Positions 36,738 through 64,000 of a stretch of DNA of 64,000 nucleotides are shown here, piece by piece (within the stretch, counting starts at the first letter, position 1; each line of letters begins with the position of its first letter). Both the position numbers and the translations under genes were made by a program. The notes beneath the pieces were generated by a model that did no database searches, had not been told where the DNA came from, and worked only from the letters and a program-made list of their open reading frames with translations. The DNA is from Marsupella aquatica (Eukaryota > Plantae > Marchantiophyta), in contig OZ316898.1 in assembly GCA_973895155.1 (NCBI GenBank), positions 16,088,330 to 16,152,329 on the forward strand, read 5' to 3'.

Positions 36738-36870
36738 TGGTAATGGTAATGGTAATGGTAATGTATTATAAGCTCCGGGACCATGAAAGTCAAAGGAGCT
36801 GCCACAAAAAGTAAAGTACAATGCAATCAAAGAAAAGAGCAACCAAAAGAGATTGCTCAGAAGAGGACAA

Positions 36871-39800
36871 CTATGTCCTCAAAGAAACTATGGACCTAGA
36901 GATCCCTGAAAGATTTTCCAAACCTATTCTCCTTTCCCTATCCACCGCAAAGATATATCTTCCAAGTTGCTGAGGGGGCAGACCAAACAATGCATACAAA
37001 TCTTTCACCAAGATTTGAGATGCCATCCTAACCCCCTCATAAAACTTGCAAGCAATGAATACATGATATTCATTCTCTATACTAGAGCTATCACATAGTT
37101 GACAAACCCTCTTTTTCCTGTCAATATCCTTCCATCTCCCTTGTTCTACTTCAAGGTGGTGTGAGCTTAGTCTATACTGAGCAATAAGTTGTCTAAGTTG
37201 TACTGAGATAGTGCTAGATAAGTATTCTTGTTCTCGATATTTCTTCATGGGGTTCACATCTCTCATGTAGTATTGCTGCCGTGGGCTAGGTTCATGCCAA
37301 AGTTTGTGCAAAGCCTTTTGCTCAAGTTTTGCTCTTAGCTTGGTTGGGTGTGTTGGCCATTCATGTTCAGGAAAATCCCAAGCATGGGCCCACTTGCACA
37401 CATCTGCATACCACCCTTTAGCTGAAGATGAGCGCAAGGCATGAAAAGGAAATCTGTTTTCTTCCAACTCTCTTACACGCATGATGTATTTGAGTGTGTG
37501 GAAGAGTGTCTCCACCTCCAAAGGAAACAAGCCTGCCTCTGCAAGTGTAAGTGTATATGGGGTTTGTGACTTGATCCCAAGCTCCATCTCAAGAAATAGC
37601 TTTTGCAGCCCCTCAATCTGTTGCCACCCAGATTTAGACACACCTGCTCCCCAAATTGGTGCTCCATAAAGAATGACTGGTTTCACCAAAGCTCCAAAGA
37701 GATGTTTCCTTAACCTCCAAGTGTGTAGACCAGCTCTTTTGCATTTGTTCATGAATGCATAAAAAGCTCTGTACCCATTGGCAGCCCTAGATTTTACACA
37801 TGAGGCCCAACTCAAGTTTTGAGAGAACTCCACCCCAAGGTATTTGTAGGTCCTCACAAATTCCACCAGATTCCCTTGGAAGTAGAGCTCTGGATTTTGT
37901 CGTGTGCCAATGCCCAAACACTTGGTCTTCTTGAGGTTGACTACCATCCCTGTTGCTTGACAAAACTCCTCCAAGGCATTGAGATGTCTTTGCAAAGCTT
38001 CTTGAGCATGAGCAAGTAGGACCACATCATCTGCAAATATAAGAAGTTGGAGGACAAACCTACCCAATTGAGTGCCAACTCCACCATGCTCCTCCAAAAT
38101 GTTGTGTAGCTGATCAATGAAGATGCCAAATAGAGTTGGTGAGAGAGGACAACCTTGGATCACCCCAAGAGTGCTCCAGATTTCTTCAGAGGTTTCCTTT
38201 GAAAGTTTGATGCGCACTTCTTGGTACAATTTAGAAACAGCCAACCTGAGCTCTTCAGGCACTTCCAACTCCACCATCCTATCCCAAAGCTTGGATCGGG
38301 AAACTTTGTCAAAGGCCTTGGAGAAGTCCACAAACAAGCAAAATAATGGTTTATGTGGAGATTTGGCCTTTTCACACAACACCCTCAAGCAGAGAATGTG
38401 ATCCATAGTGCTGAATTCTCTCCTAAAACCTGCTTGTGAAGGTGCCCTTTTCATCTCACTCTCCAACCAAGAGCTTAATCTGGCTTCAAGTAGTCCTCCC
38501 AAAATTTTAGCAAAAGTATTGCCTACCATGATGGTTCTGTAGTTGTGCACATCGTCCTTGTTGCCTGCCTTGAAGATAGGCACCACTCTTCTGGTCATCC
38601 AAGCTTTAGGTAAACCTAAAGCCATTGCTTGATTCAGCTCATGCACCAAGTTTGTTAGTAAAGAGGGTCCTCCCCACAAAAGAAGCTCCAAGTTCAGGCC
38701 CAACAGATCTTTAGCTTTCCCATGTTGCATGTGGGAAAGATGCACCTTCACCTCCCTCTCTGTAAACTGAATGGTGTCCCCAAGGGGCAAAGGCATGCCA
38801 CTAGCATCTGGAAAGAAATACAAGGATGTGACATAGGTTACCAGGTCCTGGTGATCCAAGGGGGGAGTAGTCTTGCCTGATTGCATTCTCTCCCAAAAAC
38901 GTTTTGGATGTTTGATGAACTCCTCACATAGTGATTGTTGATGACTCTTCAAGAAGCACCTCTTCTTGTGTTTGATGAAGTTCTTGTACATAGTGAATGC
39001 CAAAAATCTCTTTTCCCCTGAATGTGATCTTGCTTGCATCCTTGCTCTAGCACAATCCTCGTCAAACCAAGCCTTCATGTTTTGCTTTCTAGGGGGTTTG
39101 GTGGAGAAAGTAGAGGCTGCTGCTTGTGCTATGACTTCTGAGAGCTCAATCTGATCATCCAGGGTATGGAGAAGATGTTCAAAGTTGGCTTTGAAGATGA
39201 CTTCTCTATCAGGGTCTAGAAACAGAGGTTTGGGTACTGGCTTTCTATGCACTTTGTTTGGGATTGTGGTCAGGTCAAGATGGAACAACAAAGGCAAGTG
39301 TGAAGACTCTGGTTGTTGATCAAGTATTTGAAAGTCAACCACTCTAGTGGCAGAGGTAGGTGAGGCAAGAAGGTAATCAATGGTACTACATCCTTGTTTA
39401 GATCTAAAAGTATAACCAGATGATTGGGGAAATCTCTCAAGCCCATTCAATATTCTTAGATTACAAGAAGCTCCCAAATGCAAAAAGTGACGTGTCATGT
39501 CATTTGTTCTGGTGTCAAGAGCCTCTCTCACCCAAGGTATCTCTTCACTACATGATGACCAAGGTAAAGTTCCTAAGTCCTCACTTTCAGTAAATTGTTC
39601 ATTAGATACCCTAGCATTAAAGTCCCCCACTATCCATGTCTCCCCTAGTGGTGATATATCATGAATGACTTGGATTAACCTATGAAATGGATAATGTGCA
39701 TCAGCAATTCCCATCTTATAGACATTCATATTAAGGGGAGCAAAGTAGGTGACAATCAGAAATGATGGAGTACCTCTGGTATGAAGTCTCACCACCATGA

Positions 39801-40074
39801 ACTGCTTGCTGGGATCTTCATGTTCAATAGAGGTGATGTGTTGAAGTTGATTCTTGGTGTAGACAGCAATGCCTCCAAACCCTCTTCCCCGTGTGGTCTT
39901 CTTCTCATTGAAGATGGATTGTATGCAAGTAAAGCCTTTAATGCTAGGTAGAGCATTTCCCTCATATTCCCAAGTCTCCGTGAAAAGCAAGATGTCAAAA
40001 TTCTCAAACAAAGGTTCCCCTCCAATTGCTGTTTCTATGGAAAGTCCTGAAACATTCCATGCCATGACTCTCAA
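36871..40074 (-). CDS. LINE ORF2: APE endonuclease, reverse transcriptase and C-terminal CCHC-like domain
   Basis: AWNVSG, ETW, GDFNAR, STIDY; QAGFR, FVDFSKAFD, GVIQGCPLSPTLF, FADD, YKYLG; HHLEVEQGRW...CQLC...ENEYHVFIAC. Confidence 0.95.
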   Translation of the reverse strand: MRVMAWNVSGLSIETAIGGEPLFENFDILLFTETWEYEGNALPSIKGFTCIQSIFNEKKTTRGRGFGGIAVYTKNQLQHITSIEHEDPSKQFMVVRLHTRGTPSFLIVTYFAPLNMNVYKMGIADAHYPFHRLIQVIHDISPLGETWIVGDFNARVSNEQFTESEDLGTLPWSSCSEEIPWVREALDTRTNDMTRHFLHLGASCNLRILNGLERFPQSSGYTFRSKQGCSTIDYLLASPTSATRVVDFQILDQQPESSHLPLLFHLDLTTIPNKVHRKPVPKPLFLDPDREVIFKANFEHLLHTLDDQIELSEVIAQAAASTFSTKPPRKQNMKAWFDEDCARARMQARSHSGEKRFLAFTMYKNFIKHKKRCFLKSHQQSLCEEFIKHPKRFWERMQSGKTTPPLDHQDLVTYVTSLYFFPDASGMPLPLGDTIQFTEREVKVHLSHMQHGKAKDLLGLNLELLLWGGPSLLTNLVHELNQAMALGLPKAWMTRRVVPIFKAGNKDDVHNYRTIMVGNTFAKILGGLLEARLSSWLESEMKRAPSQAGFRREFSTMDHILCLRVLCEKAKSPHKPLFCLFVDFSKAFDKVSRSKLWDRMVELEVPEELRLAVSKLYQEVRIKLSKETSEEIWSTLGVIQGCPLSPTLFGIFIDQLHNILEEHGGVGTQLGRFVLQLLIFADDVVLLAHAQEALQRHLNALEEFCQATGMVVNLKKTKCLGIGTRQNPELYFQGNLVEFVRTYKYLGVEFSQNLSWASCVKSRAANGYRAFYAFMNKCKRAGLHTWRLRKHLFGALVKPVILYGAPIWGAGVSKSGWQQIEGLQKLFLEMELGIKSQTPYTLTLAEAGLFPLEVETLFHTLKYIMRVRELEENRFPFHALRSSSAKGWYADVCKWAHAWDFPEHEWPTHPTKLRAKLEQKALHKLWHEPSPRQQYYMRDVNPMKKYREQEYLSSTISVQLRQLIAQYRLSSHHLEVEQGRWKDIDRKKRVCQLCDSSSIENEYHVFIACKFYEGVRMASQILVKDLYALFGLPPQQLGRYIFAVDRERRIGLENLSGISRSIVSLRT

Positions 40075-40086
40075 GGTCCCAATCCA

Positions 40087-40860
40087 TCATTTAGAAACAA
40101 CTCTCTTCTTATTGGTAACAACAGCTTGTCCATTGCGCAAGTAGGCTACCAATCCTTGGTCTTTGGCTACCCTCACCTTCTCAAGCTCAATTTTCCTTGC
40201 TTGGACTTGTGTGGGAGTCAGATCATCATCCAACCAAATCCTTAGCCCTTTAAGCATGCTCCTGTTAGCCATCACTCTAGCTTTCTCGGATTCAGCTGCA
40301 AACTTCACCAAGATTGGACGTGGAAGGTCCCCCTTCTTTTGCCCAATCCTATATGCTTGCAAAATGATAGGGTCATGCACTTTCATCTGAGATTGGAAGA
40401 ATGAAATTGCTACCTTCTTGGTGTCTTCCTTCTCCTCCTCAACAAGGCCTGATATTTTGCAGTTGCTGACTCTTGCATGCTGGTTCTTGTGTTCTTCTTC
40501 TAGTGCTCTCCTCTCCTCCTCCTTGGCTTGGACAAATTCCATATGTGATTGTTTTGCAGCCTGTGCAAAGGTTTTGAGCTTCTCCTCAATCTCCCCTACA
40601 GCCTCATGTATCACTGATTTCTCTGGGCACATACTCTTCTCCATGTCTCCAAAACACGATGCAAGCAATGAGAGTTGCTTACCATTCTCCTGAGTTTGAG
40701 ATCGAAGATCACTAATCAACCTCTTTTGCTTGACATTCTCATTCTTTAGCTCCGTCACCTCCTTGCTGAGCGTGGTAATCTCAATTGCGGAGTTTTCAGC
40801 CACAACTAAGATTTTCTCAAGCAAAGCCTTGAGATGGGCAATCTCCTCCGTTGCCATCAC
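40087..40860 (-). CDS. LINE ORF1 (coiled coil plus RRM-like domain)
   Basis: N-terminal coiled coil; NCKISGLVE...AYRIG...RPILVKF...IWLDDDLT. Confidence 0.88.
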   Translation of the reverse strand: MMATEEIAHLKALLEKILVVAENSAIEITTLSKEVTELKNENVKQKRLISDLRSQTQENGKQLSLLASCFGDMEKSMCPEKSVIHEAVGEIEEKLKTFAQAAKQSHMEFVQAKEEERRALEEEHKNQHARVSNCKISGLVEEEKEDTKKVAISFFQSQMKVHDPIILQAYRIGQKKGDLPRPILVKFAAESEKARVMANRSMLKGLRIWLDDDLTPTQVQARKIELEKVRVAKDQGLVAYLRNGQAVVTNKKRVVSK

Positions 40861-40929
40861 AAAGCTGAAACTGTTGTTAGAATGTACTCTTAGACGACAA
40901 ATAGAAATTGGGAGCAGTAGAGGATGTCA

Positions 40930-41760
40930 GTTGCAGCTCTACCTTTGCCAGTGATACACTCTCGCTGTTTGCAACACTCTGCCAAAATCTGAGCTCAAAC
41001 CGCAGCCGATTGCCCTTCCAACTCGAAATGAAATTTCGCCCCAAGCTCAGAATCCCGAAACTGGACACGTAGCAGATCGTGCATGCTAAAGTGTATACCA
41101 AACAATGTCGGTTGCAGCTCTAACTTTGCCAGTGATACATTCTCGCTGTTTCCAATGCTCTGGCAAAGTCTGAGCTTAAACCGTAGCCAATTTCCCTTCC
41201 AACTCGAAGTGAAATTTTGCCCCAAGCTCAGAATTGTGAAACTGGAGACGTAATAGATCGTGCATGCTAAAGTGCATATCAAACAATGTCGGTTGCAGCT
41301 CTAACTTTGCCAGTGATACATTCTTGCTGTTTCCAATGCTCTGGCAAAATCTGAGCTCAAATCGCAGCCGATTGCCCTTCCAACTCGAAGTGAAATTTCA
41401 CCCCAAGCTTAGAATCGCGAAACTAGAGACGTAGCAGATTGCGCATGCTAAAGTGCATACCAAACGATGTCGGTTGCAGCTCTAACTTTGCCAGTGATAC
41501 ATTCTCGCTGTTTCCAATGCTCTGGCAAAGTCTGAGCTTAAACCGCAGCCGATTGCCCTTCCAACTCGAAGTGAAATTTCGCCCCAAGCTCAGAATCGCG
41601 AAACTGGAGACGTAGCAGATCGCGCATGCTAAAGTGCATACCAAACGATGTCGGTTGCAGCTCTAACTTTGCCAGTGATACATTCTCGCTGTTTGCAACA
41701 CTCTGCCAAAATCCGAGCTCAAACCGCAGCCGATTGCCCTTCCAACTCGAAGTGAAATTT
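40930..41760 (-). repeat. 181-bp tandem monomers in the LINE 5' UTR (about 4.6 units)
   Basis: gttgcagctcta.ctttgccagtgatac recurs at 40930, 41111, 41292, 41473 and 41654. Confidence 0.95.
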
Positions 41761-41808
41761 TGCGTACCGCTGTGCTTAGATGTTTTGACATTTCCGTGCC
41801 CATTCTCC

Positions 41809-42024
41809 ATAGGGAAAGGAGAATAGGTTTGGAAAATCTTTCAGGGCTCTCTAGGTCCATAGGGCTCTCTAGGTCCATAGTTTCTTTGAGGACATAGTTG
41901 TCCTCTTCTGAGCAATCTCTTTTGGTTGCTCTTTTCTTTGATTGCATTGTACTTTACTTTTTGTGGCAGCTCCTTTGACTTTCATGGTCCCGGAGCTTAT
42001 AATACATTACCATTACCATTACCA
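41809..42024 (+). mobile_element. LINE fragment B (3' end only), joined head-to-head to copy A
   Basis: Matches the ORF2 end, 3' UTR and tail; carries an 18-bp duplication (agggctctctaggtccat x2). Confidence 0.93.
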
Positions 42025-42372
42025 ATGAAACATGATGAGACTGGCCTATGGCTTGCCAATTTTAATATGCCTTATCCCTCAGCTGAGAAATTAGATTATG
42101 TCTTGCCCAGTCAGATTGAGCAGGTTTTCTTTTACCCAAACACAACCAGGGCCTCTTGGAGACATGTCCTCCATAAGGAAAGGAGGTCTCGACGAGTTGT
42201 TGAGGGTATAAATGACCTTGAGTTTAATGATCTTGTGGATCGTCATGAGGCTGTTGAGGCTGAGCTTGTTGCAGCAGCTAACAGACGAGTGCCCTTGGAT
42301 GAAGGAGAAATTGTAGTTTTTCAGGAGATGGCAGTGTTGACAAGAAGTGATAGTGATGATGATGATGTCTAG
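42025..42372 (+). pseudogene. CACTA TnpD C-terminal part (DUF4216-like)
   Basis: DETGLWLANF...YVLPSQIEQVFFY...WRHVL followed by an acidic tail. Confidence 0.75.
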
Positions 42373-43873
42373 GAAGATGAAGAAGATGAAGAAGATTCAG
42401 ATGAAGAGTGAGAATGTGCCTCTTGGGGCAGGAAGTACTGATTGCTCTTTGGTGATAGTGTTTTTTTATGCAATTTTGAATTGAAATGCATGATCGGTCT
42501 GGGGTGAAAGGTTCTGAGAATGCCTATGAGGCACAGAGGAATAAGAACATAGCAGCCAACCAAGCTATACTTGACCAGTTCGTAGGAACTGCTGCAAGAG
42601 ATTTAAAGTATGTACTCTATCCCTATATAGTTTTGAATTTATGCCTTGACTTTATTACTAATGGTTCACACTCATGACATTGCCAGGGTGATTGCAATTT
42701 ACGGGTGAGGCAAGGGTCAAGCGTCTATCTAAGTTGTCAAAGAAGACTGGACAGAATCAGCCGTCTATAGCAAAGCGTAGGAGTTCATGATTACTTGGCA
42801 GGCACCTGGAGAAAATCATGGAGAGTGACAACAGTGGGAGTGATGAGTCTGAAAAATCAGCTGAGACAAATTATGGGGCAGGTTTAAGTGATGGCTTTGA
42901 ATCAGATGGTGTTGAAGAGCTACGTAAGGTAAGAGAAGACTCACTGTCATTTTCTACTTCACTTGAAGCTAATTGCATTAATTGTCCAATTTCTGTATAT
43001 CTCAATCTGGTGCTACTGTTACTAATTACTTGAATGTGCACACTGTTATCCTCAGGCTCCCCGAAAGTCAGGGCTTAAATATTATGTGGATCCTAGGACA
43101 AAGGAAGTGAGTGTGTGTAAGTAATTTATTCATTATCTCACTTGCCATGAACTTGTTTTTGACTTGCCAAGTGAATCCTGAGTTCAGAGATTCTCACAGT
43201 TGCAGATTGATTGTCACAAGTTACATTAATGTTTGACTTGCTAACAAAATCTCTTTGGTTGGTTGTGGTAGTGACACCCTTTCCTAGAGCATCTGCTCAT
43301 GATCTGGATGATGGAATTGTCACAGAAAGATCAGAATAGACACACGTACGACAATCATCTTGTGCTGCAAAGAAACAATGGGAAGAGAACACAAGCGAGC
43401 GTCGCAAGTTGGGCATGAAGAAAGCTGCAATCACTGTATGTTGCTTGCGAAAGATCATGCTTGTGATTTATTGTTTGTCCTCTGTTATTGGTCTCTTATG
43501 ATGCATTGTGTGTAGATTTGGAACAATGATGTTGATCCTAGTGATCCATATCGGGCACGTTGGGGAGATGATCTTCGTGCTGTGTGTATGGGTAAACTGA
43601 ATCCTTCTATCTGTGAGATTAAGAAGCAAGACTCAGGGGTTCTTTTTCATGTTTATGCTGTGCTGGAGAACGATTGGGAGTATGTACAGGGGACTCTGTC
43701 AATGAAGAAGTTCAGGTCTCATTGTTCAGCAGTAATGAAAGCACAGCGAGCAAGACTCCACAAACATTTTTAGGAAGGTGGAAGACGCTTGGACAAGAAT
43801 CCCCCTGAGAATATGAAGCCTGAACATTGGAAGGCATTGTGTGAGTGGTGGCTGTCTCCAGAAGGGATGTCTA

Positions 43874-44416
43874 TGGTAATGGTAATGGTAATGTATTATA
43901 AGCTCTGGGACCATGAAAGTCAAAGGAGCTGCCACAAAAAGTAAAGTACAATGCAATCAAAGAAAAGAGCAACCAAAAGAGATTGCTCAGAAGAGGACAA
44001 CTATGTCCTCAAAGAAACTATGGACCTAGAGATCCCTGAAAGATTTTCCAAACCTATTCTCCTTTCCCTATCCACCGCAAAGATATATCTTCCAAGTTGC
44101 TGAGGGGGCAGACCAAACAATGCATACAAATCTTTCACCAAGATTTGAGATGCCATCCTAACCCCCTCATAAAACTTGCAAGCAATGAATACATGATATT
44201 CATTCTCTATACTAGAGTTATCACATAGTTGACAAACCCTCTTTTTCCTGTCAATATCCTTCCATCTCCCTTGTTCTACTTCAAGGTGGTGTGAGCTTAG
44301 TCTATACTGAGCAATAAGTTGTCTAAGTTGTACTAAGATAGTGCTAGATAAGTATTCTTGTTCTCGATATTTCTTCATGGGGTTCACATCTCTCATGTAG
44401 TATTGCTGCCGTGGGC
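43874..44416 (-). mobile_element. 5'-truncated LINE copy C
   Basis: Tail, 3' UTR and ORF2 end; TSD TCTA at 43870-43873 and 44417-44420. Confidence 0.93.
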
Positions 44417-44710
44417 TCTAGCATTGACAAGATGAAGTATGCAAGATCTAAAGTCATTAATCCATCAAGGGTTGGACGAGGTGGCTACCGTGGGAAGGAG
44501 TCTGACTTTGTAAGTATACAAGATTCATTTACAGTTATTATGAATGTTTGTAAACAACAAGTAGGCTTACAGCATGTGTCTTCCTTTGTTTTAGCAATTG
44601 GTATGCAAAGAAGCAAGAAGTTTCATTCTAATATGTATTGTTTGATTTCATTGCTCATAAGAGAAAAAGAGGGGAAAGTCCACCTCTATCTGAGCTACGC
44701 TCAAAAGATG

Positions 44711-45331
44711 GTAATGGTAATGGTAATGGTAATGTATTATAAGCTCCGGGACCATGAAAGTCAAAGGAGCTGCCACAAAAAGTAAAGTACAATGCAATCA
44801 AAGAAAAGAGCAACCAAAAGAGATTGCTCAGAAGAGGACAACTATGTCCTCAAAGAAACTATGGACCTAGAGAGCCCTATGGACCTAGAGAGCCCTGAAA
44901 GATTTTCCAAACCTATTCTCCTTTCCCTATCCACCGCAAAGATATATCTTCCAAGTTGTTGAGGGGCCAGACCAAACAATGCATACAAATCTTTCACCAA
45001 GATTTGAGATGCCATCCTAACCCCCTCATAAAACTTGCAAGCAATGAATACATGATATTCATTCTCTATACTAGAGCTATCACATAGTTGACAAACCCTC
45101 TTTTTCCTGTCAATATCCTTCCATCTCCCTTGTTCTACTTCAAGGTGGTGTGAGCTTAGTCTATACTGAGCAATAAGTTGTCTAAGTTGTACTGAGATAG
45201 TGCTAGATAAGTATTCTTGTTCTCGATATTTCTTCATGGGGTTCACATCTCTCATGTAGTATTGCTGCCGTGGGCTAGGTTCATGCCAAAGTTTGTGCAA
45301 AGCCTTTTGCTCAAGTTTTGCTCTTAGCTTG
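44711..45331 (-). mobile_element. 5'-truncated LINE copy D
   Basis: Tail and ORF2 end with the 18-bp duplication; TSD GATG at 44707-44710 and 45332-45335. Confidence 0.93.
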
Positions 45332-45548
45332 GATGATAGATTTGGAGTATCAAGTGTGAGATCTGTCACAGGACAGACCACACCATCTCATCGAAGAGGC
45401 AGAAAGTCAATTGTGAGTATTAGTTCACAAGTCCAATTTTTGATTTTCAAATTGCCAAGTCTAGGTGATACCAACTAACTTTTGTATGATTGTTCAATGG
45501 TTGCAGACACCAGGTTCCAGGGCTATGATGGGAGACGAGGAAGGACGT

Positions 45549-47865: not shown

Positions 47866-48424
47866 ATGTCGGCCTACTCGCCAACATCATAAAATCATTC
47901 AAGCAGACCCAATATGTCCTTTCCGTACACATTAATGCGACCAAATTAGAATGTCAGCGAGACCGCCGACTTGATCTTTACTATAATTGTTTTGGAAACT
48001 TCATACATTGTCTCTCCTTGGTGGGTTAGGCGCTACGCTTGGCTGTTTCGTGTTGGGAAAAGATCTCGGCGAGGGTCGCCAACTTCACAAAGCTGCATGC
48101 TCAAAACAAAGTTGTCTACTCAAAACCGCAAAATGTGTCAGAGACCCTCGCCGAGTGTTGCATGGCATTGGCGATCTGACGTACGTCCAGCAATCTGACA
48201 TATGCCAGCATATCTCAGAGAAGGCCGCCAAGATCTGGCCGAGTATCATCTCAGAGACCCTCGCCGAGTTTTGCATGTCGGCGAGGTGGTCGACATTGGC
48301 GATCTGACGTACATCCAGTGATTTGACGTACCCCAGTATATCTCAGAGAAGGCCGCCGAGATCTGACCAAGATTCATCTCAGAGACCCAAGCTGAGTTCT
48401 GCATGTCGGCGAGGTAGCCGACAT
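47866..48424. repeat. Segment bounded by inverted repeats, with internal palindromic repeats (MITE or subterminal-repeat-like)
   Basis: atgtcggcctactcgccaacat at 47866 is the imperfect inverse of atgtcggcgaggtagccgacat at 48403-48424. Repeated ctcgccgag...tgcatgtcggcgag units inside. Confidence 0.55.
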
Positions 48425-51907: not shown

Positions 51908-52690
51908 TCATTTAGAAACAACTCTCTTCTTATTGGTAACAACAGCTTGTCCATTACCATTACCATTGCGCAAGTAGGCTACCAATCCTTGGTCTTTGGC
52001 TACCCTCACCTTCTCAAGCTCAATTTTCCTTGCTTGGACTTGTGTGGGAGTCAGATCATCATCCAACCAAATCCTTAGCCCTTTAAGCATGCTCCTGTTA
52101 GCCATCACTCTAGCTTTCTCGGATTCAGCTGCAAACTTCACCAAGATTGGACGTGGAAGGTCCCCCTTCTTTTGCCCAATCCTATATGCTTGCAAAATGA
52201 TAGGGTCATGCACTTTCATCTGAGATTGGAAGAATGAAATTGCTACCTTCTTGGTGTCTTCCTTCTCCTCCTCAACAAGGTCTGATATTTTGCAGTTGCT
52301 GACTCTTGCATGCTGGTTCTTGTGTTCTTCCTCTAGTGCTCTCCTCTCCTCCTCCTTGGCTTGGACAAATTCCATATGTGATTGTTTTGCAGCCTGTGCA
52401 AAGGTTTTGAGCTTCTCCTCAATCTCCCCTACAGCCTCATGTATCACTGATTTCTCTAGGCACATACTCTTCTCCATGTCTCCAAAACACGATGCAAGCA
52501 ATGAGAGTTGCTTACCATTCTCCTGAGTTTGAGATCGAAGATCACTAATCAACCTCTTTTGCTTGACATTCTCATTCTTTAGCTCCGTCACCTCCTTGCT
52601 GAGCGTGGTAATCTCAATTGCGGAGTTTTCAGCCACAACTAAGATTTTCTCAAGCAAAGCCTTGAGATGGGCAATCTCCTCCGTTGCCAT
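51908..52690 (-). CDS. LINE ORF1 (copy E) with an NGNG insertion
   Basis: Nearly identical to copy A ORF1, but reads YLRNGNGNGQAV. Confidence 0.85.
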   Translation of the reverse strand: MATEEIAHLKALLEKILVVAENSAIEITTLSKEVTELKNENVKQKRLISDLRSQTQENGKQLSLLASCFGDMEKSMCLEKSVIHEAVGEIEEKLKTFAQAAKQSHMEFVQAKEEERRALEEEHKNQHARVSNCKISDLVEEEKEDTKKVAISFFQSQMKVHDPIILQAYRIGQKKGDLPRPILVKFAAESEKARVMANRSMLKGLRIWLDDDLTPTQVQARKIELEKVRVAKDQGLVAYLRNGNGNGQAVVTNKKRVVSK

Positions 52691-52762
52691 CACAAAGCTG
52701 AAACTGTTGTTAGAATGTACTCTTAGACGACAAATAGAAATTGGGAGCAATAGAGGATGTCA

Positions 52763-53530
52763 GTTGCAGCTCTACCTTTGCCAGTGATACACTCTCGCTG
52801 TTTGCAACACTCTGCCAAAATCTGAGCTCAAACCGCAGCCGATTGCCCTTCCAACTCGAAATGAAATTTCGCCCCAAGCTCAGAATCCCGAAACTGGACA
52901 CGTAGCAGATCGTGCATGCTAAAGTGCATACTAAACGATGTCGGTTGCAGCTCTAACTTTGCCAGTGATACATTCTCGCTGTTTCCAATGCTCTGGCAAA
53001 GTCTGAGCTTAAACTGTAGCCAATTTCCCTTCCAACTCGAAGTGAAATTTTGCCCCAAGCTCAGAATTGCGAAACTGGAGACGTAACAGATCGTGCATGC
53101 TAAAGTGCATATCAAACGATTCGATTGCAGCTCTAACTTTGCCAGTGATACATTCTTGCTGTTTCCAATGCTCTGGCAAAATCTGAGCTCAAACCGCAGC
53201 CGATTGCCCTTCCAACTCGAAGTGAAATTTCACCCCGAGCTCAGAATCGCGAAACTAGAGACGTAGCAGATCGCGCATGCTAAAGTGCATACCAAACAAT
53301 GTCGGTTGCAGCTCTAACTTTGCCAGTGATACATTCTCGCTGTTTCCAATGCTCTGGCAAAGTCTGAGCTTAAACTGCAGCCGATTGCCCTTCCAACTCG
53401 AAGTGAAATTTCGTCCCAAGCTCAGAATCGCGAAACTGGAGACATAGCAGATCGCGCATGCTAAAGTGCATACCAAACGATGTCGGTTACAGCTCTAACT
53501 TTGTCAGTGATACATTCTCGCTGTTTCAAT
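52763..53530 (-). repeat. 181-bp 5' UTR monomers of copy E
   Basis: Same unit as 40930-41760, truncated in the fifth unit. Confidence 0.93.
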
Positions 53531-56500
53531 CTCTAGAAAGGAAATCAATTACATGCTAGAAATATGGCAAGACTAGACATATGAAGAGAGATTGTCGAGT
53601 CAAGTAGACTCATCAACCATCAGCAAATGTAACCACTGATGTACGTTGATGTGATCAATTTACTCAATGATGATATTTATGATGCCAAGGTTTTGCTCTC
53701 AACGTAGTGTCACATCCAGGTGATGATGATTGGATACTAGATAGTGCATGTACCTTTCACATTTGCTCTAGGAGAGATCTTTTTTGTTCTTACACGATTT
53801 CCAACGGTTCAGTGTTGATGGGAAATGGAATCCCATGTCAAGTAGTTGGACTTGGATCTGTGAGATTTTAGATGTTTGATGGTGTTGTGAGGACATTGAG
53901 AAATGTGAGACATATTCTCAGCATGATGAAAAATCTCATTTCACTTGGAGTGTTATAAGCAAATGGCCATTGGTGAAGTTTTGCTAATGGTGTCCTTCAA
54001 GTTTCAACTAGTACTAAAGTTCTGTTAAAGGGAAAGAGACATAAAAATCTATCTGTTGTGGAGGGCAATGTAGTCTGTGATGAAGCCAATGTAACCTTAT
54101 CTCGTGAGAAGAAAGCCCGGTTGTGGCACTTCAGATTGGGTCACATGAGTGAAAAATGTTTGGCTGTTCTTTAGAAAAAAAGATTACTTTCTAATTTACA
54201 ATCTTGTAAATTAGATTTGTATGAGCATTGTGTGCTTGGAAAGCAACATAGTAAATCCTTCGAAGTTGGAACTCACACCAGCAAGGAGGTACTTGAGTAT
54301 GTACATAGTGATGTGTGGTGACTCGCCCCTACTCCCTCACATTCTGGAAGAGTTTATTATGTCATGTTCATTGACAATTACTCAAGGTATGTGTGGATAT
54401 ACTTTCTACACAATAAATCTGATTGTTTTGTCACTTTTAAGGAGTGGAAAGCCCAAGTTACGTATTGAACTAGTAACAAGGTGAGATATTTTTGATCGAA
54501 TAACGGCGGTGAATACGGTTTTGGTGAATTTGGAACGGATTGTAAAGAGCAGGGGATTACATGCCATCTCACAACAAGTTATACTCCTCAGCAAAATGGT
54601 GTTTTTGATAGGCTCAACCGAACACCATTGGAGCGCTCGAGGAGTATGTTGAGCCAATCATGCTTACCACATGAATTTTGGGCAAAAATTGTCAACACTA
54701 CAACTTATTTGGTAAATTTCTCTCCATCTAGTGCAATTGGATTCAAGATGCCATTTGAAATGAGGTACGGGCGTCAAACAAATTAATCACATCTGAGGAT
54801 TTTTGGATGTCATGCTATGTGCTTACACCTTTCTAGCTTTGTTCTAAGTTGGAGTCTAGGCCGAGGAAGTGCATTTTCCTTGGATATCAGAAAGGTGTAC
54901 AAGGTTATAGGTTATGAGATCCAGTAACCTCTAAGTTAATTATCAGTAGAGATGTTTCCTTTAATGAATCCTAATCATCAAAGGAGGTGAATAGTTCTTA
55001 GGGCTCCCATACTGACAAGGGAAAATCTCCTATCCCGGACCCGGTTGGGGGGAGATAAGTCACGATGATGTTCATGACAAGAGGAAAGAGATGCTATGGA
55101 GCTAGTTCCTATAATGGAACAAGAGGAGCCAACAACAACAGAAGATTAGCTTGAATCATCTACTAGAAGAATATCCAATTGTTCTACTAGAGCTCCTACG
55201 AAGTATGGACAATGGACAGATTCATCAAGGCTAGACGATGCTGACATTGCACATGATGATGATGATAGGGCACTGATCTTGGAAGAAAGAGAACTTTCTT
55301 CATAGCATGATGCGTACATTTCAGACAAGAAAGATGAATGGAATGCAACAATGCAGAGAGAATTGTAATCTTTAAGTGACAATAAAACATGGGAGCTGGT
55401 GCAACTGCCAAATAATCAACAAGTGGTGGACAGCAAGTGGATTTACAAGCTGAAGGACAACTCTTTAGATAGAGGAGGCAAGATATACAAGGCAAGGCTT
55501 GTTGCTAAGGGATTCACTCAGGAGAAGGGAGTGGATTATAATGAGGTTTTCTCACCAGTTGCCAAGTATTCCATGATACAAATTTTGTGTCAACTTGTTG
55601 TATTTTTTTATTTGGTTTTAGATCAAATGGATGTTGATACTGCTTTTCTCTATGGCACCTTGGAGGAACAAATTTTCAAGAGGCAACCACTGGGCTTTGG
55701 GAAGAAGGGCCAAGAGAGTTTAGTTTGCAAATTGCTTAAGTCCCTATATGGATTGAAGCAAGCTCCTTGGCAATGGACCAAGCAATTTCATGATTTCATG
55801 TTTGCACAAGGATTCAATGGGATGGTGTATCATGACCCTTGTGTGTATACAAAATCAGTCAAGAATGGTGTGTTTGGTTGTCTGGAAATAAGGAGGTCAA
55901 CGACTGGGTATGTGTTTACTCTTGGAGGAGGATGCATAAGTTAAAGATCTACCTTGTAGAAGTGTGTATCTCAGTCTATTACAGAAGCAGAATATGTTGT
56001 AGCAGCAAAAATAGCAAATGAAGCAATTTGGTTGGACAAGTTGGTCATTGAGATGGGATTGGAGCATGGAAAAATGACTCTTCATTGTGACAGCCAGAGT
56101 GTGCTTCACCTAGCTATTAACCAGGTTATGGATAACAGGGCAAAACACATTGACATCAAGTACCATTTTATTAGGCAAGCAGTGTCTGAAAAAATATTTG
56201 AGCTAGTCAAGATTGATGGAAAGCTCAACCCGGCTGATGCCACTAGAAGAATCCGAGGTGAACTGAGACCGCAATATGTGACTCATTTTGGCTCATGTGA
56301 CTTCATTGTGACTCAACGTGACTTGACCCACGCTGTGACCCTTGGAGTTGCAAAAGTTGAGACCAAAAAATGGAAGTCACTATTGATACTAGGCTTTGCA
56401 ACTCGCTTGATACCCATTTGTGACTGATCTGTGACTTTATTGTGGAGTCTAGCCTTGTTTCGACGTGACTACAATATGACTTCAGCGAGTCACATCGTAA

Positions 56501-58785
56501 GTCACAAACATGACTTACCCGCATTCAACAACGACTAGCATGTGACTATTTAGTGTCACAGGAGAGACCAATGGAGACCCTGGCCCGCGTCACACAACAG
56601 AATCATTTGGGACTCTATATACTCATGTTTATAACTAATAAGGTTCACATGCAAGTTATAACCATGACTAATGAACACAGAGGGACAGTTCATAAGGAGA
56701 GAGAGCACTCGACATTACAATACATAGAAACCTGATGTTCTAACTTTAGAAATATAACACATTGAATACAAGAAATGAACATAGCATGAATGACATCCAC
56801 ATGAAACAAAGCATCATATAAGCACATCCTACATAAAACATTCATAAGAATTAAACACAATCACAATCTTGCTAAAAAATGAAGATCATTTGAATTCCAA
56901 TGGAATAGTTTACAATGTGATCAATGTAATTCAAACAAAATAAGAACTCATAATTGATGACTGTAGGATGAGATAACTGAAAGCACATGCATGATACTAT
57001 GAATCTCCAAGAGGACATGATTCTTGTACTGCTTCTTGACATCTAAAATCTACATAACATGACTCACACTACAAACAAATAATGGCATGACATTGTTATG
57101 AATCCTCTATGAACTTGCTTGGCCATAATACCAAAGAACCTGCAGCATCTCCAAGTGTCTTTTGAGGAGGATCATCATTTGTGTTTGGAATGGGAAGGAC
57201 AACTTTAGGTTTCACTAATAATGTGACTAACACTACTGAATAATAACCTGGGGGAATCCTCTTGCCATGGAACGTTGTGGAACCAACCTGCACTCTGCCA
57301 AATCCTACTCGTGTTCCACTCTCATCAACAGCTAACAAGCCACTTTGTCCCTCAGCATTAGGTGCTTTCCCCACTTCCACCTTAGATCTTTCTGCCAGCA
57401 CCGTTCTTGGAGGTTTGTATGAAACCTTTGACGTGGCTCTGCTCTCACCAGCAGACTTGCTTCGTGTGCGCATGCTTTCTCTCTTCACAGCAGTGAAGCT
57501 AGGCTCAGTAGGTTCCTCTGTTAGGACTGTCACAGTAGCAGGTTCATCACCTGGGAGTGTCATACCAACTAACTCTTTGGTTGGATTTATCTCAACAAGA
57601 GGCACACCTGTCATTGAGAATGATACATTCTGCAAATCATTTATCTCTGCAATGGAGTCAAGATCGACATAGCATGAATCTGGCTCAATGGTATCATTGT
57701 CATGCTTGCTGATATCCTCATTTGCCCCAACATTGATATCATCCACTCCCTTGCCAATGTCATCCTCATCCAAACATGGTTGACTGCCCTCTGTCAAACA
57801 AGTTGCTTGTACAGACCGCAACTAGTTGCCTCTAAATTACAGCGAGTATATGCCAGGTTCTCATACTTCTTCTCTGTAGCACCTGTCTTATTCTCTATGG
57901 ACACAACAACCACAATATATGTTACTGAAAATAACACATTCAACAAACAATGTCAATTCAAACTATACATTTAATAATCATAGCCCACATAGTTGTAAAG
58001 GCCTTACCTTCAAGCCTACATGTCGTTGGCATGCCAGAAGAGTGCATCGACTTTGCCACCTCAAGTGGTGATGGTGGAACTCCTGCAGAATTGGAATCAA
58101 TTTTATCTCTCATCGACACAACAGCTTCCATTAATTTCTTGAAGTTCACATGGAACAAGTCAGTCAATGAATTCAAACGTTCATTGATCTCTGGAAGACA
58201 TGTTTCGACAGCCTTCAAACGACCACTTATCTCTGTAAGTGAAGATCCACCTCCCTACATGACACAGGGGTATAGGTTCAATCACTCCATATGAAATGTT
58301 GGGCAATATATGCACAATCAATGTTATATACAGTGTACACCTGAAATTCAACGCAGGTCATTCAATTACCAATCAGAACTCATATAACTTACATGCTTGG
58401 AGGATTCAGATGCACCCTCTTGAGCCCGGGTGTTCACAATTTCAGCCCTCAACTCTTCTTTTGAAGGGCTTTGCCCCAATTGGGCTTTCTGCACATGCAT
58501 GGTAAACACAAGTTATCGATCAATATTCAGGGAACGTACACTAAAAAACAAAGTTTACATGTATGGGTTTACACTAAAAAACAGTACATAGTGTAGCATA
58601 AATTACATAGCTAGGCCATTCGAGTTGGAAGGGCAATCGGCTGCGGTTTGAGCTCAGATTTTGGCAGAGTGTTGCAAACAGCGAGAGTGTATCACTGGCA
58701 AAGGTAGAGCTGCAACTGACATCCTCTACTGCTCCCAATTTCTATTTGTCGTCTAAGAGTACATTCTAACAACAGTTTCAGCTTT

Positions 58786-59559
58786 GTGATGGCAACGGAG
58801 GAGATTGCCCATCTCAAGGCTTTGCTTGAGAAAATCTTAGTTGTGGCTGAAAACTCCGCAATTGAGATTACCACGCTCAGCAAGGAGGTGACGGAGCTAA
58901 AGAATGAGAATGTCAAGCAAAAGAGGTTGATTAGTGATCTTCGATCTCAAACTCAGGAGAATGGTAAGCAACTCTCATTGCTTGCATCGTGTTTTGGAGA
59001 CATGGAGAAGAGTATGTGCCCTGAGAAATCAGTGATACATGAGGCTGTAGGGGAGATTGAGGAGAAGCTCAAAACCTTTGCACAGGCTGCAAAACAATCA
59101 CATATGGAATTTGTCCAAGCCAAGGAGGAGGAGAGGAGAGCACTAGAAGAAGAACACAAGAACCAGCATGCAAGAGTCAGCAACTGCAAAATATCAGGCC
59201 TTGTTGAGGAGGAGAAGGAAGACACCAAGAAGGTAGCAATTTCATTCTTCCAATCTCAGATGAAAGTGCATGACCCTATCATTTTGCAAGCATATAGGAT
59301 TGGGCAAAAGAAGGGGGACCTTCCACGTCCAATCTTGGTGAAGTTTGCAGCTGAATCCGAGAAAGCTAGAGTGATGGCTAACAGGAGCATGCTTAAAGGG
59401 CTAAGGATTTGGTTGGATGATGATCTGACTCCCACACAAGTCCAAGCAAGGAAAATTGAGCTTGAGAAGGTGAGGGTAGCCAAAGACCAAGGATTGGTAG
59501 CCTACTTGCGCAATGGACAAGCTGTTGTTACCAATAAGAAGAGAGTTGTTTCTAAATGA
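58786..59559 (+). CDS. LINE ORF1 (copy F); first ATG at 58789
   Basis: Protein identical to copy A ORF1. Confidence 0.88.
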   Translation: MMATEEIAHLKALLEKILVVAENSAIEITTLSKEVTELKNENVKQKRLISDLRSQTQENGKQLSLLASCFGDMEKSMCPEKSVIHEAVGEIEEKLKTFAQAAKQSHMEFVQAKEEERRALEEEHKNQHARVSNCKISGLVEEEKEDTKKVAISFFQSQMKVHDPIILQAYRIGQKKGDLPRPILVKFAAESEKARVMANRSMLKGLRIWLDDDLTPTQVQARKIELEKVRVAKDQGLVAYLRNGQAVVTNKKRVVSK

Positions 59560-59571
59560 TGGATTGGGACC

Positions 59572-62500
59572 TTGAGAGTCATGGCATGGAATGTTTCAGG
59601 ACTTTCCATAGAAACAACAATTGGAGGGGAACCTTTGTTTGAGAATTTTGACATCTTGCTTTTCATGGAGACTTGGGAATATGAGGGAAATGCTCTACCT
59701 AGCATTAAAGGCTTTACTTGCATACAATCCATCTTCAATGAGAAGAAGACCACACGGGGAAGAGGGTTTGGAGGCATTGCTGTCTACACCAAGAATCAAC
59801 TTCAACACATCACCTCTATTGAACATGAAGATCCCAGCAAGCAGTTCATGGTGGTGAGACTTCATACCAGAGGTACTCCATCATTTCTGATTGTCACCTA
59901 CTTTGCTCCCCTTAATATGAATGTCTATAAGATGGGAATTGCTGATGCACATTATCCATTTCATAGGTTAATCCAAGTCATTCATGATATATCACCACTA
60001 GGGGAGACATGGATAGTGGGGGACTTTAATGCCAGGGTATCTAATGAACAATTTACTGAAAGTGAGGACTTAGGAACTTTACCTTGGTCATCATGTAGTG
60101 AAGAGATACCTTGGGTGAGAGAGGCTCTTGACACCAGAACAAATGACATGACACGTCACTTTTTGCATTTGGGAGCTTCTTGTAATCTAAGAATATTGAA
60201 TGGGCTTGAGAGATTTCCCCAATCATCTGGTTACACTTTTAGATCTAAACAAGGATGTAGTACCATTGATTACCTTCTTGCCTCACCTACCTCTGCCACT
60301 AGAGTGGTTGACTTTCAAATACTTGATCAACAACCAGAGTCTTCACACTTGCCTTTGTTGTTCCATCTTGACCTGACCACAATCCCAAACAAAGTGCATA
60401 GAAAGCCAGTACCCAAACCTCTGTTTCTAGACCCTGATAGAGAAGTCATCTTCAAAGCCAACTTTGAACATCTTCTCCATACCCTGGATGATCAGATTGA
60501 GCTCTCAGAAGTCATAGCACAAGCAGCAGCCTCTACTTTCTCCACCAAACCCCCTAGAAAGCAAAACATGAAGGCTTGGTTTGACGAGGATTGTGCTAGA
60601 GCAAGGATGCAAGCAAGATCACATTCAAGGGAAAAGAGACTTTTGGCATTCACTATGTACAAGAACTTCATCAAACACAAGAAGAGGTGCTTCTTGAAGA
60701 GTCATCAACAATCACTATGTGAGGAGTTCATCAAACATCCAAAACATTTTTGGGAGAGAATGCAATCAGGCAAGACTACTCCCCCCTTGGATCACCAGGA
60801 CCTGGTAACCTATGTCACATCCTTGTATTTCTTTCCAGATGCTAGTGGCATGCCTTTGCCCCTTGGGGACACCATTCAGTTTACAGAGAGGGAGGTGAAG
60901 GTGCATCTTTCCCACATGCAACATGGGAAAGCTAAAGATCTGTTGGGCCTGAACTTGGAGCTTCTTTTGTGGGGAGGACCCTCTTTACTAACAAACTTGG
61001 TGCATGAGCTGAATCAAGCAATGGCTTTAGGTTTACCTAAAGCTTGGATGACCAGAAGAGTGGTGCCTATCTTCAAGGCAGGCAACAAGGACGATGTGCA
61101 CAACTACAGAACCATCATGGTAGGCAATACTTTTGCTAAAGTTTTGGGAGGACTACTTGAAGCCAGATTAAGCTCTTGGTTGGAGAGTGAGATGAAAAGG
61201 GCACCTTCACAAGCAGGTTTTAGGAGAGAATTCAGCACTATGGATCACATTCTCTGCTTGAGGGTGTTGTGTGAAAAGGCCAAATCTCCACATAAACCAT
61301 TATTTTGCTTGTTTGTGGACTTCTCCAAGGCCTTTGACAAAGTTTCCCGATCCAAGCTTTGGGATAGGATGGTGGAGTTGGAAGTGCCTGAAGAGCTCAG
61401 GTTGGCTGTTTCTAAATTGTACCAAGAAGTGCGCATCAAACTTTCAAAGGAAACCTCTGAAGAAATCTGGAGCACTCTTGGGGTGATCCAAGGTTGTCCT
61501 CTCTCACCAACTCTCTTTGGCATCTTCATTGATCAGCTACACAACATTTTGGAGGAGCATGGCGGAGTTGGCACTCAATTGGGTAGGTTTGTCCTCCAAC
61601 TTCTTATATTTGCAGATGATGTGGTCCTACTTGCTCATGCTCAAGAAGCTTTGCAAAGACATCTCAATGCCTTGGAGGAGTTTTGTCAAGCAACAGGGAT
61701 GGTAGTCAACCTCAAGAAGACCAAGTGTTTGGGCATTGGCACACGACAAAATCCAGAGCTCTACTTCCAAGGGAATCTGGTGGAATTTGTGAGGACCTAC
61801 AAATACCTTGGGGTGGAGTTCTCTCAAAACTTGAGTTGGGCCTCATGTGTAAAATCTAGGGCTGCCAATGGGTACAGAGCTTTTTATGCATTCATGAACA
61901 AATGCAAAAGAGCTGGTCTACACACTTGGAGGTTAAGGAAACATCTCTTTGGAGCTTTGGTGAAACCAGTCATTCTTTATGGAGCACCAATTTGGGGAGC
62001 AGGTGTGTCTAAATCTGGGTGGCAACAGATTGAGGGGCTGCAAAAGCTATTTCTTGAGATGGAGCTTGGGATCAAGTCACAAACCCCATATGCACTTACA
62101 CTTGCAGAGGCAGGCTTGTTTCCTTTGGAGGTGGAGGCACTCTTCCACACACTCAAATACATCATGCGTGTAAGAGAGTTGGAGGAAAACAGATTTCCTT
62201 TTCATGCCTTGCGCTCATCTTCAGCTAAAGGGTGGTATGCAGATGTGTGCAGGTGGGCCCATGCTTGGGATTTTCCTGAACATGAATGGCCAACACACCC
62301 AACCAAGCTAAGAGCAAAACTTGAGCAAAAGGCTTTGCACAAACTTTGGCATGAACCTAGCCCACGGCAGCAATACTACATGAGAGATGTGAACCCCATG
62401 AAGAAATATCGAGAACAAGAATACTTATCTAGCACTATCTCAGTACAACTTAGACAACTTATTGCTCAGTATAGACTAAGCTCACACCACCTTGAAGTAG

Positions 62501-62775
62501 AACAAGGGAGATGGAAGGATATTGACAGGAAAAAGAGGGTTTGTCAACTATGTGATAGCTCTAGTATAGAGAATGAATATCATGTATTCATTGCTTGCAA
62601 GTTTTATGAGGGGGTTAGGATGGCATCTCAAATCTTGGTGAAAGATTTGTATGCATTGTTTGGTCTGCCCCCTCAGCAACTTGGAAGATATATCTTTGCG
62701 GTGGATAGGGAAAGGAGAATAGGTTTGGAAAATCTTTCAGGGCTCTCTAGGTCCATAGTTTCTTTGAGGACATAG
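59572..62775 (+). CDS. LINE ORF2 (endonuclease, RT, CCHC-like domain), copy F
   Basis: 1067-aa open frame with all catalytic motifs present. Confidence 0.95.
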   Translation: MRVMAWNVSGLSIETTIGGEPLFENFDILLFMETWEYEGNALPSIKGFTCIQSIFNEKKTTRGRGFGGIAVYTKNQLQHITSIEHEDPSKQFMVVRLHTRGTPSFLIVTYFAPLNMNVYKMGIADAHYPFHRLIQVIHDISPLGETWIVGDFNARVSNEQFTESEDLGTLPWSSCSEEIPWVREALDTRTNDMTRHFLHLGASCNLRILNGLERFPQSSGYTFRSKQGCSTIDYLLASPTSATRVVDFQILDQQPESSHLPLLFHLDLTTIPNKVHRKPVPKPLFLDPDREVIFKANFEHLLHTLDDQIELSEVIAQAAASTFSTKPPRKQNMKAWFDEDCARARMQARSHSREKRLLAFTMYKNFIKHKKRCFLKSHQQSLCEEFIKHPKHFWERMQSGKTTPPLDHQDLVTYVTSLYFFPDASGMPLPLGDTIQFTEREVKVHLSHMQHGKAKDLLGLNLELLLWGGPSLLTNLVHELNQAMALGLPKAWMTRRVVPIFKAGNKDDVHNYRTIMVGNTFAKVLGGLLEARLSSWLESEMKRAPSQAGFRREFSTMDHILCLRVLCEKAKSPHKPLFCLFVDFSKAFDKVSRSKLWDRMVELEVPEELRLAVSKLYQEVRIKLSKETSEEIWSTLGVIQGCPLSPTLFGIFIDQLHNILEEHGGVGTQLGRFVLQLLIFADDVVLLAHAQEALQRHLNALEEFCQATGMVVNLKKTKCLGIGTRQNPELYFQGNLVEFVRTYKYLGVEFSQNLSWASCVKSRAANGYRAFYAFMNKCKRAGLHTWRLRKHLFGALVKPVILYGAPIWGAGVSKSGWQQIEGLQKLFLEMELGIKSQTPYALTLAEAGLFPLEVEALFHTLKYIMRVRELEENRFPFHALRSSSAKGWYADVCRWAHAWDFPEHEWPTHPTKLRAKLEQKALHKLWHEPSPRQQYYMRDVNPMKKYREQEYLSSTISVQLRQLIAQYRLSSHHLEVEQGRWKDIDRKKRVCQLCDSSSIENEYHVFIACKFYEGVRMASQILVKDLYALFGLPPQQLGRYIFAVDRERRIGLENLSGLSRSIVSLRT

Positions 62776-64000
62776 TTGTCCTCTTCTGAGCAATCTCTTT
62801 TGGTTGCTCTTTTCTTTGATTGCATTGTACTTTACTTTTTGTGGCAGCTCCTTTGACTTTCATGGTCCCGGAGCTTATAATACATTACCATTACCATTAC
62901 CATTACCATTCATTCTTACCAAACGTTTAGCTGTCGGTGCAGTGCCGGTCCTTCCTGTCAGATTAGGGTTCTGAACACTCAACCTGGCCTCGGTCATCTG
63001 TGAACTCTTCTTTTTTGAAGCATCTATTACAAAATAAGCTACTAACCTTGCCCACACTTTATCATCACAACTGGCTGGTGGAGGCATATATGGCTTCTCC
63101 CCACCTTCCTTCCAAGCCTTATGCATTCTCCACCTCTCTTGCTTGATGATTTTACCTGTTGTACTCTCTAGGCAACCTATGTCCACGCCATCATCACTGC
63201 CCACATAATTCCATTTGGCAGCAACATTTTCACATACAGTCTTCCAATCTTTTGGATGCTATTTTTTAAAATTAATAACACTCACAACTAACCAACGCAA
63301 TACTTCAGCTTTCAAATCAGCATGCCATCGGTTCTTGCGAGGACACTCAGCATCCACCCATTGTCTCTCATTCAACTTTACGTTCCCTTTCTTTGTCACC
63401 TCCCCTCGTGCACTGCTCTCGGTAGTACTGGGCGTTGTATTGGCCACCCCTTCATTCACCCTACCTGGGGTTCTGAAGCCACTTGGGAAAATACAATGCC
63501 ATTCATGCTTGAGAACTACATATAGCAGAATGGATGACGGCAACATTCAATGCTTCACTTCAAGAAAAATTCTTCAAACATACATACCTGTAGCTCTGCC
63601 TGTAGATGCCTATGCAGGGACTACACTCTGAAATTGTTGCGACCCTGGACCACTTGTCCAGCCTAGTACAGGGGCCGGATGATGTCACTTTCTAGGTATG
63701 TGTGTGCAAACATATGTACTGAAAACTAAGTACAAACTGTAGGAAAACAACTGAACATTCACCGACATACCTGTCCCCCTTCCGTGTTGCATCTGCATAG
63801 GGGCATTAGTGAATACTTGAGTCGATGGTTCGACTGTCCAACCTGCACACATACATTTTCTATCTTTATGCATGTGCAGAGTCCCCCCCACGTGAATGGA
63901 CTCCACATATAATGAGTTCTTCCATTGCTGACAAGATCAGACATTACCTGCCCCTCTTCCAGCGTTTGTAGGTACTGTATTTTGATATCCCTGCCAATTA

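Follow-up and report, generated by a model that had tools for sequence, protein, structure and literature searches.

Nested insertions of a young LINE family in a transposon-rich region of the leafy liverwort Marsupella aquatica

Six Copies of One LINE Family in a 64-kb Window

The stretch of 64,000 nucleotides analysed here (the window; positions 16,088,330 to 16,152,329 of contig OZ316898.1, assembly GCA_973895155.1) comes from the leafy liverwort Marsupella aquatica, and it contains six near-identical copies of one long interspersed nuclear element (LINE), inserted in and around two CACTA transposons and one copia element. The copies were located by self-BLAST and a repeat search over the 64-kb window. 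They are designated A, G, B, C, D and E in the order of their positions, and correspond, respectively, to the copies A, B, C, D, E and F of a sequence-only reading that preceded this work. Copy A (36738-41763, minus strand; 5026 bp) is near full length; it comprises a tail (36738-36763), an intact open reading frame 2 (ORF2; 36871-40074; 1067 aa), an intact ORF1 (40087-40860; 257 aa) and 4.6 tandem monomers (40924-41760). Copy G (41809-42024, plus strand) is a 216-bp 3' end that carries an 18-bp duplication and stands head-to-head with A, the 5' ends of the two being separated by a 45-bp spacer (41764-41808) that is unique in the window. Copies B (43873-44417, minus strand) and C (44709-45332, minus strand) are 3' ends of 545 bp and 624 bp, which carry the single-nucleotide variant of A and the 18-bp duplication, respectively. 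Copy D (48561 to about 53540, minus strand; about 4980 bp) is near full length, with 4.3 monomers and a single stop codon in its ORF2 (50840-50842). Copy E (58619-62908, plus strand; 4290 bp) is truncated within the last monomer, and its ORF1 (58786-59559) and ORF2 (59572-62775) are intact. Near-full-length and 5'-truncated copies number three each. No further member of the family, young or decayed, was found in the window by sensitive blastn or by tblastn with ORF1 and ORF2, in agreement with the earlier count of six near-identical insertions at 36738-62908 and none in the first 36 kb.

The six copies are 98.7-100% identical to one another, and the changes private to each of them amount to 0.2-0.5%, mostly C>T and G>A (13 of the 20 private substitutions of copy D). 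The shared variants define three classes, the same as those previously proposed: A and B have AGGGATCTC in common, G and C carry the 18-bp duplication, and D and E have neither. In every pair of copies the similarity ends exactly at the borders of the element, self-BLAST of the window with the LINE copies masked revealed no flank-to-flank repeats, and the truncation points and tail lengths vary from copy to copy. Hence, on account of these distinct flanks, truncation points and tail lengths and of the three variant classes, the copies arose by six separate events of retrotransposition, with three or more source variants behind them, and not by duplication, in agreement with the sequence-only reading. 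Near-identical repeats of 4-5 kb are admittedly difficult to assemble, and G and C are 100% identical over 216 bp, two points that favour segmental duplication, gene conversion or an assembly error as the origin of the copies; yet the copies are individually marked by their truncation points, tail lengths and private substitutions, and the exact borders and unlinked flanks led us to reject a segmental duplication or an assembly artefact, an origin that we regard as extremely improbable. The small private divergence and the absence of diverged members from the window speak for a young family, which is probably still active; copies A and E, at least, in which both ORF1 and ORF2 are intact, look able to transpose autonomously.

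The tail motif CATTACCATTAC has 18 matches in the window for 0.22 expected, all of which lie in the six tails or at 51952-51969 within copy D. The latter site had been taken for a tail-only insertion into a sibling LINE. It does contain a 12-bp in-frame insertion, (CCATTA)2, at 51956-51967 (plus strand) in the ORF1 of D, antisense to D and adjoining a native CCATT. The insertion itself is real. An aborted retrotransposition event is one reading of it; slippage, or a variant that D received from its source copy, fits equally well.

Structure and Coding Capacity of the Element

From 5' to 3', the element consists of 181-bp monomers, ORF1 (257 aa), an in-frame TGA, ORF2 (1067 aa), a 3' untranslated region (UTR) of about 130 nt and a hexamer tail, (CATTAC)n, made of 3.3-4.3 units. 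In the near-full-length copies, the 5' UTR is formed by 4.3-4.6 tandem monomers that are about 91% alike (40924-41760 in A; 52756-53534 in D); the array of copy D also displays a 361-bp period corresponding to two monomers. ORF2 matches the Pfam endonuclease PF03372 (2e-10, residues 4-247) and the reverse transcriptase (RT) PF00078 (6.7e-31, residues 506-749), and its C-terminus bears the motif CQLC...H....C; the same Pfam search revealed no RNase H domain. A Pfam search with the 257-aa ORF1 returned no match, and a protein atlas search with ORF1 gave weak leads only. The copies possess neither long terminal repeats (LTRs) nor terminal inverted repeats, and they share a common 3' end and differ in their 5' truncation, which is the pattern of non-LTR retrotransposons with an apurinic-type endonuclease (APE).

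Relatives and Classification

The closest relatives in the protein database have the same two-ORF layout and an ORF2 identity of 57-61%; the protein collection searched contains none above 61%. Two of them, L002 and L003, extend to the 3' end, where they keep the hairpin AGCTCC...GGAGCT that directly precedes the tail of our element (62840-62910 of the window; 4130-4210 in L002 and 4130-4199 in L003). The tail repeat differs by family, being (CATTAC)n here, (GATTT)n in L002 and (ACTTG)n in L003. As the hairpin is invariant among the three sequences compared, these provide no covariation support for it. An Rfam search with the element gave no match, including to the UnaL2 3' element.

The two ORFs lie in the same frame with a single TGA between them, in an SK*W context (TCT AAA TGA TGG; window positions 59551-59575, and 40075-40090 in copy A). 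The context TCT AAA TGA TGG is identical in three relatives (L001, 780-810; L002, 850-870; L003, 840-900), at 57-61% ORF2 identity. This conservation suggests that ORF2 may be produced by programmed UGA readthrough or by reinitiation.

As to the clade, a PDB search with the RT retrieved R2 structures at 1e-26 versus 1e-15 for the human L1 ORF2p, and the RT being nearer to R2 than to L1 ORF2p indicates that the element is not an L1. The L1 clade was ruled out on this ground and on that of the hexamer-repeat tail. Elements of the RTE group, including RTEX, encode APE and RT only, with no RNase H, and have a simple-repeat rather than a poly(A) tail. Our element, with its APE and RT, no RNase H and a simple-repeat tail, agrees with these features. 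Malik and Eickbush reportedly confined, in 1998, the strict RTE clade to elements that have a single ORF, or at most a very short ORF1, and that lack a Cys-His motif downstream of the RT; the conserved 257-aa ORF1 and the Cys-His motif at the ORF2 C-terminus place our element outside this strict clade. The PDB search leaves RTE and RTEX undistinguished, and the clusters of the relatives bear no clade names. The term LINE/RTE-X is said to be used also in a fern genome paper.

Insertion Sites and Target DNA

No target duplication of 5 bp or more occurs at any of the six copies. Duplications of 3 bp are readable at E (CCA), C (CAT) and B (TAG), and possibly at A (TAC); there is none at G and D. 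Those of E and C match the tail. The six junction sequences are all different, with no common motif and with 0-3 bases of microhomology to the tail. Since the target sequences differ, the element is not site-specific, and a site-specific LINE was ruled out by the same six junctions.

Copies A and G interrupt the transposase gene TnpD of the first CACTA (CACTA 1). The N-terminal part of this gene (34665-36737, plus strand; Transpos_assoc and Transposase_21) ends with ...IDVMHIEKNICESLLRFLCGEKDTGS where A begins, and its Transposase_21 match (PF02992) reaches 2.8e-70. Full-length TnpD homologues, taken from a profile search, align up to 36736, and for one of them, P0363 of 818 aa, the alignment picks up again (residue 685) at precisely 42025, in a C-terminal exon (42025-42369, plus strand; residues 685-743 of P0363) that starts at the tail junction of G. 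The coding pieces were searched singly and not as joined models. The earlier assignment of two insertions to TnpD is borne out by both flanks. At least about 150 TnpD codons are absent between A and G, and the gap is occupied by A, the 45-bp spacer and G. The spacer has no significant match to the TnpD homologues and no second occurrence in the window, and it represents either leftover sequence of the CACTA transposase or filler DNA. Just upstream of the transposase gene lie PHD-like and tandem BRCT coding pieces (32373-34252, plus strand), which may be CACTA accessory genes.

Of all the features of the window, the head-to-head A/G pair on either side of a transposase deletion is the most unusual. 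Either the insertion of G, 45 bp away from the site of A, was accompanied by a target deletion, or both free ends of a break were extended with LINE RNA as the template; whichever the origin, two separate RNAs are required, because A and G carry different variants. The second possibility belongs to a broader explanation, according to which the LINE RT extends 3' ends at double-strand breaks or during interrupted gap repair of CACTA, so that head-to-head pairs replace the middle of the CACTA. The orientation of A and G, with their tails outward, the loss of TnpD codons that they bracket, the 45-bp spacer that joins them and the absence of a target duplication at G and D are all in line with such repair patches. 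However, B, C and E, with their uninterrupted flanks and 3-bp duplications, look like insertions made by an endonuclease in the usual way, and the possible TAC duplication at A would turn the 45 bp into target DNA and G into a plain insertion with deletion. Taking the need for two RNAs into account as well, we hold repair patching to be quite unlikely. If true, it would account at once for the association with CACTA and for the pairs that stand head-to-head with their tails outward.

Copy E lies beside a Transposase_24-like (TnpA-like) exon of the second CACTA (CACTA 2; 62909-63258, minus strand), the end of which is a splice donor, GTAAGA, at 11 bp from E, and on the other side of E a plausible splice acceptor is followed by the next exon. 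The insertion of E into an intron of a TnpA-like gene, as had been proposed, is plausible from these splice sites; the Transposase_24 match itself is weak (E-value 0.002, below the family cut-off).

Copy D is bordered on its right by a decayed copia element (53541-56000, plus strand), in which a gag zinc-knuckle remnant is followed by Pol_BBD, gag_pre-integrs, rve and RVT_2. The zinc knuckle lies 12 nt (four codons) from the 5' end of D, which confirms the claimed insertion into gag on this side; the left flank of D is not gag and contains a 128-bp tandem repeat, so that the claim holds for one flank only. This repeat (two units, 85% alike, 48166-48426, directly left of D) may be a CACTA 1 subterminal repeat, or unrelated. 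The repeat search and the masked self-BLAST of the window detected no copia LTRs.

Copies B and C are separated by 291 bp. The Pfam search of every frame of at least 60 aa on both strands gave no match at 42.0-48.6 kb, which leaves the TnpA-like identity formerly given to the flanks of B and C unconfirmed; what speaks for it there is a single 41-aa, 29% match to the CACTA 2 exon, which ends 18 bp before B.

Neither CACTA shows a pair of terminal inverted repeats (CACTACTCAAACAA at 29529 is partnerless), so that the borders of the CACTA elements are undefined, and the two CACTAs have no DNA similarity to each other. The statement that the LINE landed in other transposons is upheld, the six insertions being in the two CACTAs and the copia, with the target of B and C weakly identified.

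Clustering of the Insertions

Clustering was simulated in coordinates from which the LINE copies were removed, leaving a window of 48.3 kb. The six sites span 10.5 kb of these 48.3 kb (P = 0.0023), and four of them (A, G, B and C) lie within about 2.2 kb (P = 0.0046); both P values overstate the significance, as the window was chosen after the cluster had been seen. With this proviso, the local clustering reported by the sequence-only reading exceeds chance within the window (P of about 0.002). The trinucleotide CCA and its extensions CCAT and CCATT occur as often in the first 36.7 kb, which lack copies, as in the remainder, so that microhomology to the tail at the target does not account for the distribution.

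The sequence-only reading went on to suggest that the LINE may be targeted to CACTA loci as a hyperparasite of transposons. The label of hyperparasite adds nothing to that of nested insertion. As for true CACTA targeting, in which the LINE machinery would recognise CACTA sequence, CACTA-bound proteins or a CACTA-specific chromatin, five of the six insertions do lie in DNA assigned to two unrelated CACTAs (two in TnpD and one to three in TnpA-like genes). However, several points stand in its way. First, there is no common target sequence or position, and the two CACTAs are dissimilar in their DNA. Second, one insertion is in copia. Third, four insertions fall within about 2.2 kb of CACTA 1, whereas its 7-kb 5' part has none. 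Fourth, the LINE had little other than CACTA to hit in this region: the insertions lie in 11.5 kb of non-LINE DNA, all of it transposon (the two CACTAs and the copia), and for this reason the window cannot reveal a preference for CACTA. One window neither supports nor excludes CACTA-specific targeting, to which we attach a very low probability.

An explanation of a different kind is that insertion is random and survival selective, copies in or near genes being rapidly lost and young ones remaining in transposon islands. It accords with the fact that all six targets are dead or decaying transposons, and with the presence of at least one apparently intact host gene, for kynureninase, in the copy-free first half of the window. 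Yet the first 36.7 kb also contain transposons free of insertions, namely an L1-like LINE, a PIF1/Helitron-like gene and the 5' 7 kb of CACTA 1; the four sites in 2.2 kb are closer to one another than a rule of "any transposon DNA" predicts; and the copies are very young, which has left little time for purging. Selective survival appears to us possible but rather unlikely as the sole cause.

Comparison with Known LINEs

R2, R1 and Tx1 are site-specific LINEs, which insert at one defined sequence. Our element resembles them in recurring inside other repeated sequences, and differs from them in its six different target sites, with 0-3 bases of tail microhomology. LINEs of the stringent type, such as UnaL2 of the eel, have a 3' hairpin and a tail of short tandem repeats. 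Similarly, our element has a stem-loop directly before a tail of 5-6-nt repeats, and the tails are short, uniform (3.3-4.3 units) and different between families; unlike UnaL2, it lacks an Rfam match to the UnaL2 3' element, and recognition of the hairpin by its RT is putative. Rodent L1 elements carry tandem promoter monomers in their 5' UTR. By comparison, the 5' end of our element has 4.3-4.6 tandem 181-bp monomers, within which copies are truncated; there is no sequence relation between the two, the element is not of the L1 clade, and its monomers are a putative promoter.

ZeppL is an element of the L1 clade with a poly(A) tail. As in the case of ZeppL, copies of our LINE pile up in one region; in contrast to it, the tail is a microsatellite, the RT is nearer to R2 than to L1, and the copies are nested mainly in other transposon families rather than in each other. 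Clusters of Zepp and ZeppL occur at the centromeres of green algae, ZeppL being the centromeric DNA of Chlamydomonas, and Jockey-type LINEs are associated with Drosophila centromeres (PMC10984392).

The closest parallel in a liverwort is that of Marchantia polymorpha, the LINE/RTE-X elements of which form a sharp peak around every centromere (Montgomery 2020, bioRxiv 10.1101/827881; restated in PMC12885004). In both cases, the host is a liverwort and one LINE family, as compared with other transposons, is concentrated in a narrow chromosomal region. The label "RTEX-like" given to our element by the sequence-only reading coincides with the RepeatModeler class used in the Marchantia paper, a correspondence of names rather than of compared sequences. 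The accompanying remark that RTEX elements are mostly known from algae and animals was overstated, as LINE/RTE-X is annotated in Marchantia. The Marchantia paper, which reports the peak in a few sentences and never dissects it, gives no anatomy of the element (tail, monomers or target sites), unlike the present work. On this comparison, the pile-up looks like the regional, possibly centromere-linked clustering of LINEs already reported for Marchantia. The other suggestion of the sequence-only reading, a targeting to a specific chromatin domain such as the centromere, thereby has a precedent in the liverwort literature.

Proposed Explanation

Taken by itself, the window displays the usual nesting of a young LINE within an island of transposons. 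Beyond this, we favour, as reasonably probable, the explanation that an active LINE has recently undergone a burst in a region rich in transposons, and possibly close to a centromere, into which it inserts or in which it persists. We propose that the copies were made by target-primed reverse transcription, in which the enzyme would recognise the conserved 3' hairpin together with the short (CATTAC)n tail of the RNA; such recognition is suggested by the relatives, which keep the hairpin while their tails differ. Short microhomologies between target and tail, such as CCA or CAT, may serve for the priming. An early stop of the synthesis would yield 5'-truncated copies, and insertion would leave a target duplication of about 3 bp, both of which are seen in the window, and would sometimes entail a loss of target DNA, as at the A/G junction. 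In this manner, six events from at least three source copies would have taken place in about 10 kb of two CACTAs and a copia. The copies would then have piled up because the chromatin here, which has few genes and many transposons and may lie near a centromere, is of the kind in which the family inserts or persists; the CACTA genes would have been hit because CACTA makes up the local DNA, and not through recognition by the LINE.

Five considerations weigh against this explanation. First, the window contains no satellite besides the 181-bp monomers of the LINE, and nothing in it marks the proximity of a centromere. Second, a bias of insertion and a bias of survival are inseparable from one window. 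Third, the grouping of A, G, B and C within about 2.2 kb is tighter than a broad regional preference predicts. Fourth, the host is a leafy liverwort and not Marchantia, and the LINEs of the two are likened by class label and not by sequence. Fifth, in Apopellia, which like our host belongs to the Jungermanniopsida, the predicted centromeres are enriched in Ty3/Gypsy elements, and the passages on them report no LINE enrichment (PMC12885004), so that a link between LINEs and centromeres is not general among liverworts.

A bolder version of the favoured explanation is that a centromere-seeking LINE is conserved in liverworts (Marchantiopsida and Jungermanniopsida), that the window lies in a centromere or pericentromere built of LINEs, and that the nucleosome-sized 181-bp monomers feed satellites like the 162-bp repeat of Marchantia. 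We put it forward as a tentative and rather unlikely proposal, and we rank the patching of broken or gap-repairing CACTAs by the LINE RT as less likely than such a centromere-seeking element.

Should the regional bias of the burst hold genome-wide, the element, being well preserved and probably active, could reveal by what means a LINE of a non-seed plant finds a chromatin domain; the domain may be a centromere. Experimental handles are provided by its intact copies, namely the hairpin conserved at the 3' end, the tails specific to each family, the UGA that lies in frame between the two ORFs and the 5' UTR made of monomers.

Other Features of the Window

The left edge of the window cuts a second LINE (2-2743, minus strand), which is L1-looking, with endonuclease and RT pieces, and which has no DNA similarity and no useful protein similarity to the young family. 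Pieces of a PIF1-like helicase (PIF1 and Pif1_2B_dom; 21122-23604, minus strand) probably belong to a Helitron or to a PIF1-type element. The kynureninase-like gene (Aminotran_5) lies at 18242-20193 on the minus strand. One of its exons is 85% identical to the kynureninase of the leafy liverwort Calypogeia fissa, which was the only relative with a land-plant name in the search; the next relatives are from protists and bacteria, at about 50%.

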